From Salpingoeca rosetta (taxonomy: Eukaryota > Protista > Choanoflagellata): a stretch of DNA of 64,000 nucleotides. The notes under the pieces were generated by a model. It saw nothing but the letters and a program-made list of their open reading frames with translations, searched no databases and had not been told where the DNA came from. This document shows positions 48,547 to 52,572 of the stretch, piece by piece (within the stretch, counting starts at the first letter, position 1; each line of letters opens with the position of its first letter). The stretch spans positions 2,111,844 to 2,175,843 of the forward strand of contig JAWQFM010000004.1 of assembly GCA_033442325.1 (NCBI GenBank), in the 5' to 3' direction. The position numbers and the translations under genes were made by a program.

Positions 48547-49114
48547 ATGGAAGGATTGTGCCTGCAGCAGTTGCCTGAGCTGTACGCGGGCCAGCTGTTC
48601 AACGACCTGGACGAGGCCAAGCTGGTGATTGAGGTGTTTTGCTTCCTCAAGCGCAGGCCCTTCCGCGTGGTGAACCGCAACCCAAATCGCATGGTCATCA
48701 AGTGCACCAACAAGAAGTGCCCCTTTGCGGTGCGCATGTCCCGGACCAAGGCGGGCGTGTTTCGTGTATCCTCCCTGTTGCTGCAGCACACCTGTCCCAG
48801 CACGGACGCGCAGGTGCAGTCTGCCACGGGGAAGAAGGCGAGCTCGCGGCAAGTTCACTCCACCGCGTTTCTTGCGCTTGTGGCGCGCGACTTTTACGTC
48901 CAGCACGCCACGACAGAGGAGGACCCCTCACGAAAGTTCATTGCGTCGACAGCATCAGCGACCACGGGACGTGCGCAGTCGTTGCACACCCCAACACTGA
49001 CCGCTGATCAGGGTGTTGGTGACCTGTTGCCACCGCTCGCCGCAAGCGATGCAGCACTTCTGCCGGCAACGGGCATGGTTGCCGCTGCCACCGCTCAGCA
49101 GCAGCAGCAGCAGC

Positions 49115-49185
<71 letters not shown>

Positions 49186-49187
49186 CT

Positions 49188-49248
<61 letters not shown>

Positions 49249-49717
49249 GTACAACAATTACAGCAGCGGCAGTTTGATGTGGCGCTTGCACGTGACATGG
49301 TTGCGTTGTATCCGATTCGATCCAGAGCAACCAGACGCCTCCCAGCACGCGTGCTCTCCTCGTATCTTGAGCGCGTGCATGGCGTGCATGTGAAGGCGAG
49401 ACAGGCCGCATATGTCATCGACAGGTTGAACGAGATGGTGTATGGCTCCCAATTCGCGCAGCTGCGCTCGCTCCGCCGCGTGGTTCTACACAGCGACCCC
49501 GGGGCAACATTTGTATTAGAGACAGAGCCGCATGCAAGCCCAGCGGCCGCAACCGCACAGCAGGCGAAGAGAAGGAAGGAGGAGAAGGGAACGAAAGAAG
49601 AGATGGCTGCCACTACAGGCAGTGGCCCCGAAACCCAGCATGCAACACCAAAGCAGCCCGGGCAGCAGGAAGAGGCCGTGCAACCAGGTCAACAACAACA
49701 ACAACAACAACAACAGC

Positions 49718-49811
<94 letters not shown>

Positions 49812-50142
49812 CCACTTTTCTCGTTTGTTTGTGGCATACACGCCCGCAAAAGCGTTCACGTGCATCGACGAGCAAGTGATTGCGCTCACGTCAGTGCCGC
49901 GCTCCACCCCATATGAAGGGGAGGTGTTGCTTGCCATTGGATATGACGCAGCGTCGGCACCCCTCGTTCTCGCGTACGCAATTGTGAAGGGCCAGCAGCA
50001 AGATGGCGATGATGGCGCCAAAGCTTCGCGCACAAGCTGTCATGCACAACAGCACACGCACAAGCAAAAACAGCAGCAGCAACAGCAAACAGAAAAACAC
50101 ACCGGGTCCCAGCAAGATCAGCAAGAACAAACGTCACAACAA

Positions 50143-50198
<56 letters not shown>

Positions 50199-50209
50199 AC
50201 AACAACAGC

Positions 50210-50276
<67 letters not shown>

Positions 50277-52572
50277 GCAGCAGCAGTGGTCGTGGTTCTG
50301 CGAGCAGCTTGCTCGGCACCTGCCGCACTTGGTGTCTGGTGACGCCGCCCAACACGTTGTCATTCTCTCCTCGCACACGCCAGCGTTGCAAGAAGCGGTG
50401 TCCACACACCTGCCACTGGCACACCATGGCATGTGCGTTGACCGGTTCTGTGCGAGCATTGCTGCGCGCACAGGCTTCAAGGGTGTGTGGCAGCACGTAA
50501 CGCAGGCAGCCATGGCATGCAACCGCCTGGCGTTTGAGTCGTGTTCATACGCGCTGCTGCAGGACAACAGGCACGCACGGGCAGGCCTCAACGACACAGA
50601 CACGCGCACGTGGGCAACCATGTCATTTCCCCATCGCCGCTTTGGTGTTGTGCGCTCACGCGTGTCAGCAACACTTGCCTCGCTGCTCACACGCATCCAA
50701 CGTCTGCCTGTCGTCGATGCCATGATTGCCATTCACAACTGGCTGCATGACACCCTGGCCTTGCGGCGCCTTGCTGTGCAGCACAAGCGTCTGGGTGATG
50801 ATGCCATTGCCAACAGTCTGCTTGACAGTGACGTTGGTGATGGTGAGGGTAGAGGCGGTGATGGTGGTGAGGGCGGGCCGGTGTCGCAAGTGATGTTGCA
50901 AACCCCGACAGCACCATCACTGTCATCATCATCAACAACAGCAGCGGCAGCAGCGGGTGTGCAGTCGTCATCGCTGTTGACGTCGTCGTTCTCGACAGCA
51001 ACACCAGCACCACCGCTAACAACAGCAACAGCAACAGCAGCAACACCACGCGGCGGCCTTCCGCCAGCTGTTCCCTCCTCCTCCTCCACAACAACAACAA
51101 CAACAACAACAGCAACGCCGACAGGGGGAATACCAGCAGCAACAGCCGTGCCACATGTTGGAGTAGCAGCAGATGAGGCACGCTCAACCGCACCACCACC
51201 GCCGCCGCCACCGCCACACGCAGCCCTGTCCGCATCCCACACCACGACGGCCGCATCAACCATCGCGTCGCACGTTGCCATGGACCTCTCACGACAGGCA
51301 CATGCGTCGTACGCGTGTGTGAATCCAACAGGAGCAGTGGCACCACTGTCCACACATCCAGAGGCGACCGCAGCATCCATGTTGCCGCCTCCCACCACGT
51401 TTGCACCGACGGGGACACACAGCCTCATGCACGCACATATGCACATGCACCCGCCCGCGTACGCACACATGCAGCCGCTCGCCCACACGCACGCACACAT
51501 GTACACGGGTGCGCCGTCCGTGGCGCCAACATCGACAGCTGCGTCCACTACTCCCGCCACCCTGTCAACAGCCGCTACAGCGCCACCGCCTGACACGTCG
51601 GCATTCGTCTCTCCACAGCCATCCCAAGTGTGGCTGCCAGGCGCAGTGGAACGGCTGCAGACGAACATGAGCCATGCTGCCATGCTGGATGTTGTGCTGC
51701 TTGATATGTCATGCGCACGTGTGAATGGGTTTGAAGTGGCACTGCACCCGCCATCGTGCACGTGTGGCGAGTGGACAGAGTATGGGATTCCCTGTGCACA
51801 TGCGTGCGCACTTGCCCGGACACAGGGCATTGATCCACAATCGCTCGTTTCCCATCGACACACCTGGGATGTGTTGGCACGGCAGTATGCACACGCCCTC
51901 GCCCCCCTCGCTCCTGTTTCTCATGCTGCGGCAGCAACAACACCAACACCAACGCCAACACCAACACCAACACCAACAGAAACGACCACGACAGCCGCGC
52001 GTAGCGGCGGTGTGGCTGCGCAGCAGCAGCCAACCGCAGCCACAACGATGGTTGGTGCTTCCACCGCCGCCACTGGTAGCGGCGATAGCAGGGGCAGTGG
52101 GGAGAAGGCCACACAGGAGCGAGCACACGTCGCCGCGGATGCACAAGAGGGCGCACCGATGGGTATTGAGCAGGTGCAACAGCAGCAAGAGCACCAGGAG
52201 CACCAGGAACGGGAGCATGGGCTTACGAGTGCTGCCATCACGGCACAACAACAGCAAGAGCAACAAGAGCCGCCAAAGGTGCCACCTCCAGCGGCGGTGA
52301 CGCGGATGGATCTCCATCTCACAAGTGATGGCCTGCTGCCGCCGCCCCACACCAAGCGGCGCGGGCGCCCGCCAACTGTTCGCATCCCCCCAACGTCCAC
52401 ATCACCCAGCATCGGCGGTGGCGGCGGCGGTGGTGGTGGACGGAAGGGTGCACGGTTGCGTGGTCGCAAAGCAGCATTGCTCGCAATACCGCCCCTGCTG
52501 CTGTCGTCAGCGACTGTCAAGTGCTCGTCGTGTGGCGAATGTGGACACAACAAGCGATCGTGCAGGAGTTGA
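48547..52572 (+). CDS. Mutator/MULE transposase-derived protein (MuDR DNA-binding domain, degenerate DDE core, SWIM finger, AT-hook-like motif, CCHC knuckle, polyQ), intronless
   Basis: GQLFNDLDEAK...IKCTNKKCPFAVRMS...FRVSSLLLQHTC; MULE core EGEVLLAIGYDAASAPLVLAYAIV...WSWFCEQL; SWIM CTCGEWTEYGIPCAHA; KRRGRPP; CSSCGECGHNKRSC. First ATG at 48547. Confidence 0.88.

Follow-up and report, generated by a model that had tools for sequence, protein, structure and literature searches.

The window analysed here, a stretch of 64,000 nucleotides on contig 4 of the choanoflagellate Salpingoeca rosetta, contains a gene at 48547..52572 on the plus strand that descends from the transposase of a Mutator-like element (MULE). 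Probably it has become a gene of the host: the encoded protein appears unable to cleave DNA, the locus appears immobile, it is transcribed, and the folded parts of the protein bear signs of purifying selection; a role as regulator is conceivable. Domesticated transposases are a well-known source of DNA-binding regulators, including the animal derivatives of pogo, piggyBac and hAT elements, and choanoflagellates are the closest living relatives of animals. Domestication of this MULE transposase had been proposed in a sequence-only reading of the window, and it is supported by the loss of the Asp-Asp-Glu (DDE) triad, by the lack of further copies, terminal inverted repeats (TIRs) and target site duplications (TSDs), by transcription, and by a signal of purifying selection.

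The descent from MULE transposases is evident from homology searches and from the predicted fold. A phmmer search with residues 581-1130 against 1.84 billion representative proteins (threshold E<=1e-3) led to 170 matches, the best of which has an E-value of 1.7e-19 at 32% identity, and nearly all of them fall into two stretches, the catalytic core and the SWIM region. The matched proteins are ordinary eukaryotic MULE transposases of metagenomes, fungi and plants, and E-values of 1e-19 to 1e-10 are reached against proteins whose cores all match PF10551. When the aligned homologue cores were compared with Pfam, the MULE profile was matched by 41 of 41 and Transposase_mut by 37 of 41. In the protein itself, the match to MULE (PF10551) reaches 17 bits with the whole protein and 22.8 bits with the excised core, below the cut-off of 27.6 bits, and is confined to the second half of this profile. 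An AlphaFold2 (AF2) model of residues 422-765, calculated on the homologue alignment, has a mean predicted local distance difference test score (pLDDT) of 85.5 and a predicted template modelling score of 0.80, and its strands and helices follow one another as in an RNase H-like fold. Comparison of this core model with the PDB by Foldseek resulted in significant matches only to chains of ISCth4, an IS256-family transposase (E=3.6e-4, probability 1.0); the IS256 family comprises bacterial relatives of Mutator. Language-model features of residues 581-760 likewise indicate a MULE origin, near FAR1-related clusters.

Within the family, the protein stands apart. In a quick maximum-likelihood tree of 46 sequences, its branch has a length of 2.74 substitutions per site versus a median of 0.85, its amino-acid composition is unusual, and it has no supported sister. 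It falls outside the strongly supported clades of the tree, including the clade with the plant sequences (Amborella, Helianthus). The suggestion that the domestication was independent of the plant cases fits this long, isolated branch, and judged from the tree the event looks separate from the plant ones. A pairing of the protein with sequence P0008 (SH-aLRT 66, a branch-support value) was not used and was flagged as long-branch attraction. Another candidate, the DDE-less MULE protein P0009 from the Logan contig set SRR18067437, was rejected as an orthologue, because it groups elsewhere in the tree and has only 28% identity. P0009, an unrelated MULE protein of 553 residues, carries N, C and H in the three DDE columns, with the CxxH motif, the DNA-binding domain (DBD), the SWIM finger and the CCHC knuckle kept; it is possibly an independent domestication elsewhere.

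The loss of the catalytic residues had first been noted by eye for both Asp residues, the Glu and the His of the CxxH motif, and each of these motifs was reproduced in a formal MAFFT L-INS-i alignment of residues 241-1341 with 45 phmmer matches of at least 500 amino acids. The column of the first Asp, which is D in 38 of 42 homologues, is occupied by T448 (IALTS; 49888-49890), and the column of the second Asp (D in 40 of 45) by S609 (ILSS; 50371-50373). The Glu column, with E in 43 of 45 homologues, is occupied by A708 (RSRVSAT; 50668-50670). In the CxxH motif (50434-50445), the Cys is retained as C630 (C in 44 of 45) and the position of the His (H in 41 of 45) is occupied by R633. According to this alignment, the catalytic triad is lost, and with T, S and A in place of the D, D and E that bind the catalytic metal ions, the protein would no longer cut DNA. 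All twelve zinc ligands are kept: C53, C58, H81 and C83 in the DBD, whose C..C..H.C pattern was checked in an alignment with 40 homologue N-termini, C1071, C1073, C1083 and H1085 in the SWIM finger, and C1326, C1329, H1334 and C1339 in the C-terminal knuckle.

The reading frame has been kept open over its whole length. The claim of an uninterrupted open reading frame (ORF) of about 1340 codons corresponds to 1341 codons plus stop with 0 stops inside, while the remaining five frames across 48547-52572 have 9-33 stops each. Transcription was examined with three stranded S. rosetta RNA-seq runs and the contig set X14, which were mapped to 50290-52645 (2,356 nt), a repeat-poor interval with the 3' 56% of the ORF; coverage figures are from about a quarter of each run. 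The RNA coverage of this interval is continuous at ~3-15x, except for a skipped repeat at ~50992-51237 and a spike at 51870-52027, and in more than 95% of read pairs the first mate lies on the minus strand, so that the reads represent one strand. Splice joints were not found in the RNA reads over 50290-52645, and coverage extends beyond the stop codon. Thus, the gene is transcribed, as the sequence-only reading had asked to be checked. The depth spike at 51870-52027 and the joints that go back on the sequence were considered as expression or rearrangement and rejected; they are cross-mapping at an (ACN)n Thr-Pro repeat.

The RNA reads also revealed a second allele, which allowed the expectation of a dN/dS below 1 to be examined. 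They differ from the assembly at 29 positions of the ORF and 2 positions of the 3' untranslated region, with every read carrying the non-assembly base, which amounts to a divergence of ~1.5%. A single indel was observed, a CAG inserted in frame after 52251 in about a third to half of the reads. For the selection test, the assembly was compared with the allele of the RNA runs, and three variable sites in the repeat at 51870-52027 were left out of the count of nonsynonymous (N) and synonymous (S) differences. The 29 coding differences consist of N=14 and S=15, versus 20.2 N expected by random placement with the same mutation spectrum (P=0.013, omega ~0.41). Sites were divided a priori into alignment columns filled in >=60% of the homologues and remaining sites. 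In the homologue-aligned columns, N=2 and S=8 were found with an expected N of 6.7 (P=0.003, omega ~0.12), and the remaining linker sites have N=12 and S=7 with an omega of ~0.7, which is indistinguishable from neutral. Such a synonymous excess in the folded parts is what would be expected if the protein is functional, with its domains under constraint and its linkers free to vary. The X14 contigs represent a third combination of variants and contain two haplotypes at 52104-52233; public data thus contain at least three haplotypes of this locus.

Several observations weigh against a functional host gene. The assignment of the transcript to the sense (+) strand relies on the assumption of the usual deoxyuridine triphosphate (dUTP) library convention, and the interval for which transcription was shown is the 3' part of the ORF. 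The selection signal likewise comes from 29 differences to one near allele in that 3' 56% of the ORF. The contrast between aligned and linker sites is borderline, with a Fisher P of 0.05, and 0.11 when only the phmmer-matched stretches are counted; adding the conserved C-terminal tail, a post hoc decision, brings it to P=0.008. The very long branch is also compatible with a long period of relaxed constraint. In addition, no orthologue in other species was found among the 1.84 billion representatives, where the best identity is 32%, in collections that are poor in close relatives and from which near genomes are possibly missing. Word-index searches with residues 581-760 and 1-178 resulted in nothing at E<=0.01, in an index of proteins of 738-2347 amino acids, and the relatives found by HMMER are mostly shorter.

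The gene could instead be the decaying remnant of an old MULE insertion, without function, open by chance and passively transcribed from a bidirectional promoter of the neighbouring gene. Such a relic would explain that all catalytic residues are gone, that the protein has a very long branch and an unusual amino-acid composition, that the ORF is flooded with low-complexity repeats, that expression is low, and that orthologues were not found in protein searches. However, the chance of 0 stops in 1341 codons is ~4e-16, as computed from the composition of the 1158 codons of the ORF outside homopolymer runs, and a relic would hardly be expected to retain twelve of twelve zinc ligands, to have its synonymous excess concentrated in the folded domains, to yield a confident AF2 model of the core, or to carry its sole observed indel in frame. 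Because of the length of the ORF and the pattern of nonsynonymous and synonymous differences, a relic is considered unlikely.

The sequence-only reading had seen no evident TIRs and had asked for the copy number, and the copy search and the check for TIRs and TSDs gave no further copies, TIRs or TSDs. When the 55.4-Mb genome was searched with the DBD, with the core and with the PF03108 profile, only the locus at 48547-52572 itself was found. Around the gene, no TIRs or TSDs were found: inverted repeats are microsatellites only, and the best match between the flanks outside low complexity is 12 nt long. Inverted repeats near the gene were ruled out as TIRs, as they consist of (CA)n versus (TG)n; such spurious long inverted repeats result from the (TG)n tract after the stop codon, the (CTCTGTGT)n repeat of the upstream gap and the (CA)n of the introns of the neighbouring gene. 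Moreover, the start codon is only 142 nt from the start of an upstream gene of the major facilitator superfamily (MFS) type, so that there is no space for a transposon end. As a single copy without TIRs that is wedged between two host genes, the gene appears to be immobile.

The other MULE loci of the genome bear on a second alternative, according to which the protein is a transposon-control factor, i.e. a dead transposase that binds the ends or the transposase of a resident active MULE family and thereby damps transposition in a dominant-negative or KP-type manner. A published survey of transposable elements in S. rosetta reports a single MULE family, SrosM, with 23 copies, which is active and highly expressed, and lists no domesticated copy (PMC6875170); this active family would provide a target. 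In line with this alternative, the assembly holds MULE loci with intact motifs, three of them identical on contigs 12 and 8 and another one at C31:9453-13453, and the protein has retained its DNA-binding and SWIM parts but lacks catalysis. In contrast, none of the seven other PF10551 loci of the genome shows similarity to this protein by tblastn, and the DBD and the core match only their own gene. Recognition of shared TIRs or heterodimerisation is unlikely because of this lack of similarity to the resident MULE loci, and a role in transposon control is regarded as quite improbable.

Identical MULE-domain matches of 49.2 bits each are located at C12:909665-912940, C12:950092-953367 and C8:292759-296034, and these three loci are probably copies of the active multi-copy SrosM family (PMC6875170). 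At C31:9453-13453, a MULE-type gene is interrupted by CA-rich intron-like segments, and a single TGA falls within its Pfam match. The gene has a MuDR-like finger, and its CxxH motif (CCFH) is intact, as are the two Asp motifs, LLADATF and IFTDQG; it is a transposase with introns or else a further gene of MULE origin. A further locus, C27:613613-616843, contains a MULE-domain ORF of 571 amino acids (58-1773) with a Q tract of ~45 residues and N/S/D-rich low complexity.

A transposase that is still active by way of non-canonical residues in its catalytic site, or an element moved in trans, would account for the full MULE architecture from the DBD through the CCHC tail, but T, S and A are unable to bind the pair of metal ions that a DDE site coordinates, the His of CxxH is also gone, and the single copy without TIRs or TSDs begins 142 nt from the start codon of a host gene, so that the T/S/A triad and the lack of transposon ends exclude this explanation in practice.

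The order of parts in the encoded protein follows that of the eukaryotic transposases of the MULE/MuDR clade from end to end. At the N-terminus, a MuDR-type (WRKY/GCM1-like) zinc-finger DBD comprises residues 14-83 (48586..48795, plus strand, as all features of the gene); DBD_Tnp_Mut (PF03108) matches residues 14-69 with 27.5 bits at a cut-off of 25, and the zinc ligands were aligned with the homologue N-termini. It is followed by Q tract 1 (residues 184-240; 49096..49266), which separates the DBD from a pre-core region (residues 241-381; 49267..49689). The latter is partly alignable to MULE transposases, the segments 248-356 and 363-405 being filled in >=60% of the homologues. Q tract 2 (residues 382-421; 49690..49809) lies directly ahead of the first core strand in the AF2 model. 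The RNase H-like core begins with its N-terminal strands (residues 422-482; 49810..49992), which include the column of the first Asp. Subsequently, a Q-rich insertion of residues 483-580 (49993..50286) that includes Q tract 3 (residues 531-580) splits the third strand from the first helix of the RNase H fold. Relatives have no spacer at this place, and the AF2 model shows a helix at model residues 101-170. The C-terminal part of the core (residues 581-765; 50287..50841), with the remaining catalytic columns, is defined by the alignment, by phmmer, by a pLDDT of >90 in the AF2 model and by the Foldseek match to ISCth4.

In the C-terminal half, long low-complexity linkers (residues 766-1024 and 1126-1262) are found on both sides of the SWIM region. 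The first of them (50842..51618) is rich in Ser, Thr, Pro, Ala and His, and it is fast-evolving according to the allele comparison. The SWIM zinc-finger region comprises residues 1025-1125 (51619..51921) and was recognised by Pfam, phmmer and alignment; PF04434 matches residues 1062-1091 with 29.4 bits at a cut-off of 19.6, and the CxC...CxH ligands are kept, being invariant across the aligned homologues. The basic motif KRRGRP (residues 1270-1275; 52354..52371) and the CCHC zinc knuckle (residues 1326-1339; 52522..52563; C in 35 of 45 homologues) complete the protein. The three long in-frame polyQ tracts that had been reported from the sequence were recovered at residues 184-234 (184-240 in the division into parts given above), 382-421 and 531-580, and they are encoded chiefly by CAA codons. 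The statement that the DBD, the SWIM finger and the CCHC knuckle are intact and that KRRGRP is present holds on the alignment. As signs of remodelling, KRRGRP and the knuckle had to be given up: an R-x-G-R-P motif and a C-terminal CxxCGxxGHNxRxC knuckle are found in most intact relatives, and these parts are therefore inherited from the MULE clade and not gained.

On this architecture, a mode of action can be proposed for the host gene. The MuDR finger would most likely act by sequence-specific DNA binding, the dead core together with the SWIM region could serve as a scaffold for oligomerisation or partner binding, and activation or interaction could fall to the disordered linkers and the long Q tracts. 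The outcome would be a lineage-specific regulator of transcription or chromatin, comparable to FHY3/FAR1 and MUSTANG of plants. The basic motifs and the Q tracts, together with the kept zinc-finger DBD, are what suggests a putative role as transcription factor. The more specific proposal of a lineage-specific, polyQ-bearing regulator of transcription or chromatin that was born from a MULE, and that is perhaps one of several dead-transposase genes recruited by this genome, is put forward tentatively.

Compared with MULE/MuDR transposases, which combine DBD_Tnp_Mut, MULE and SWIM, often with RxGRPxK and a C-terminal CCHC motif, the protein has 20-32% identity over the core and SWIM regions and the same predicted RNase H-like fold, for which ISCth4 is the nearest solved structure. 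Unlike these transposases, the gene lacks the DDE triad, the His of CxxH, TIRs and TSDs and exists in one copy, Q tracts account for ~250 inserted residues and disordered linker for a further ~500, and its branch is ~3x as long as the family median. Domesticated MULE transposases are established in plants (FHY3/FAR1, MUSTANG), and animals have proteins in which a MULE-like RNase H domain is combined with SWIM. With plant FHY3/FAR1 and FRS proteins, the gene shares the kind of origin, a WRKY/GCM1-type finger with MULE core and SWIM, and the proposed mode of action. In contrast to FHY3/FAR1, however, its DBD matches DBD_Tnp_Mut, a FAR1-family match is absent from the Pfam scan, there is no specific affinity in the tree, and the host is not a plant, which argues for an event separate from the origin of FHY3/FAR1. 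Plant MUSTANG (MUG) genes are likewise derived from the MuDR clade, with DBD_Tnp_Mut, MULE and SWIM, and are single-copy and TIR-less, but the S. rosetta protein is placed outside the plant-containing clade and no orthology is evident. Animal proteins of the ZSWIM1/ZSWIM3 type, which are holozoan as well, also have a MULE-like RNase H domain with SWIM, and 8 of 41 homologue cores also match the ZSWIM1-3_RNaseH-like profile. The S. rosetta protein, in contrast, has no match to PF21056 or to the helical and C-terminal families of ZSWIM1-3, and it differs in its N-terminal domain and C-terminal tail.

The known picture of transposase domestication is left unchanged by this case, and its value is local. 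The example is clean and is backed by four independent lines of evidence, namely catalytic loss, immobility, expression and selection. As the host is probably a model for animal origins that is open to genetic work, the idea of a MULE-born regulator is directly testable. Should several dead-transposase genes indeed have been recruited by this genome, this would suggest that choanoflagellates have repeatedly drawn new DNA-binding regulators from transposase domestication. A literature search found no earlier account of this MULE-derived gene. An exact look-up of the 1341-residue protein found no record, in a collection from which records of its own genome are possibly missing, so that nothing is implied about its annotation status.

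The genome, represented by 68 contigs, has intron-bearing genes and CA-rich microsatellites, and both are found next to the MULE-derived gene. The first exon of the upstream neighbour is located at 47964-48404 on the minus strand, and its next exon has a weak match to MFS_2 (24.6 bits). A head-to-head arrangement with this gene at a distance of about 305 nt had been reported; the divergent order stands, but the two ATGs are 142 nt apart, and ~300 nt is obtained only from an inner Met of the neighbour. The divergent intergenic region (48405..48546), which includes the 5' leader and is shared by the two genes, consists mostly of the (CTCTGTGT)n repeat, which at 48420-48520 occupies most of the gap between the start codons. 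On the other side, a long (TG)n tract is found at 52650-52730, ~80 nt past the stop codon of the MULE-derived gene. The convergent downstream neighbour (53140-54221, minus strand) has a match of 29.2 bits to Pfam Anticodon_1, the anticodon-binding domain of aminoacyl-tRNA synthetases. Its exons are split by CA-rich introns, and by eye it resembles valyl-tRNA synthetase (ValRS).

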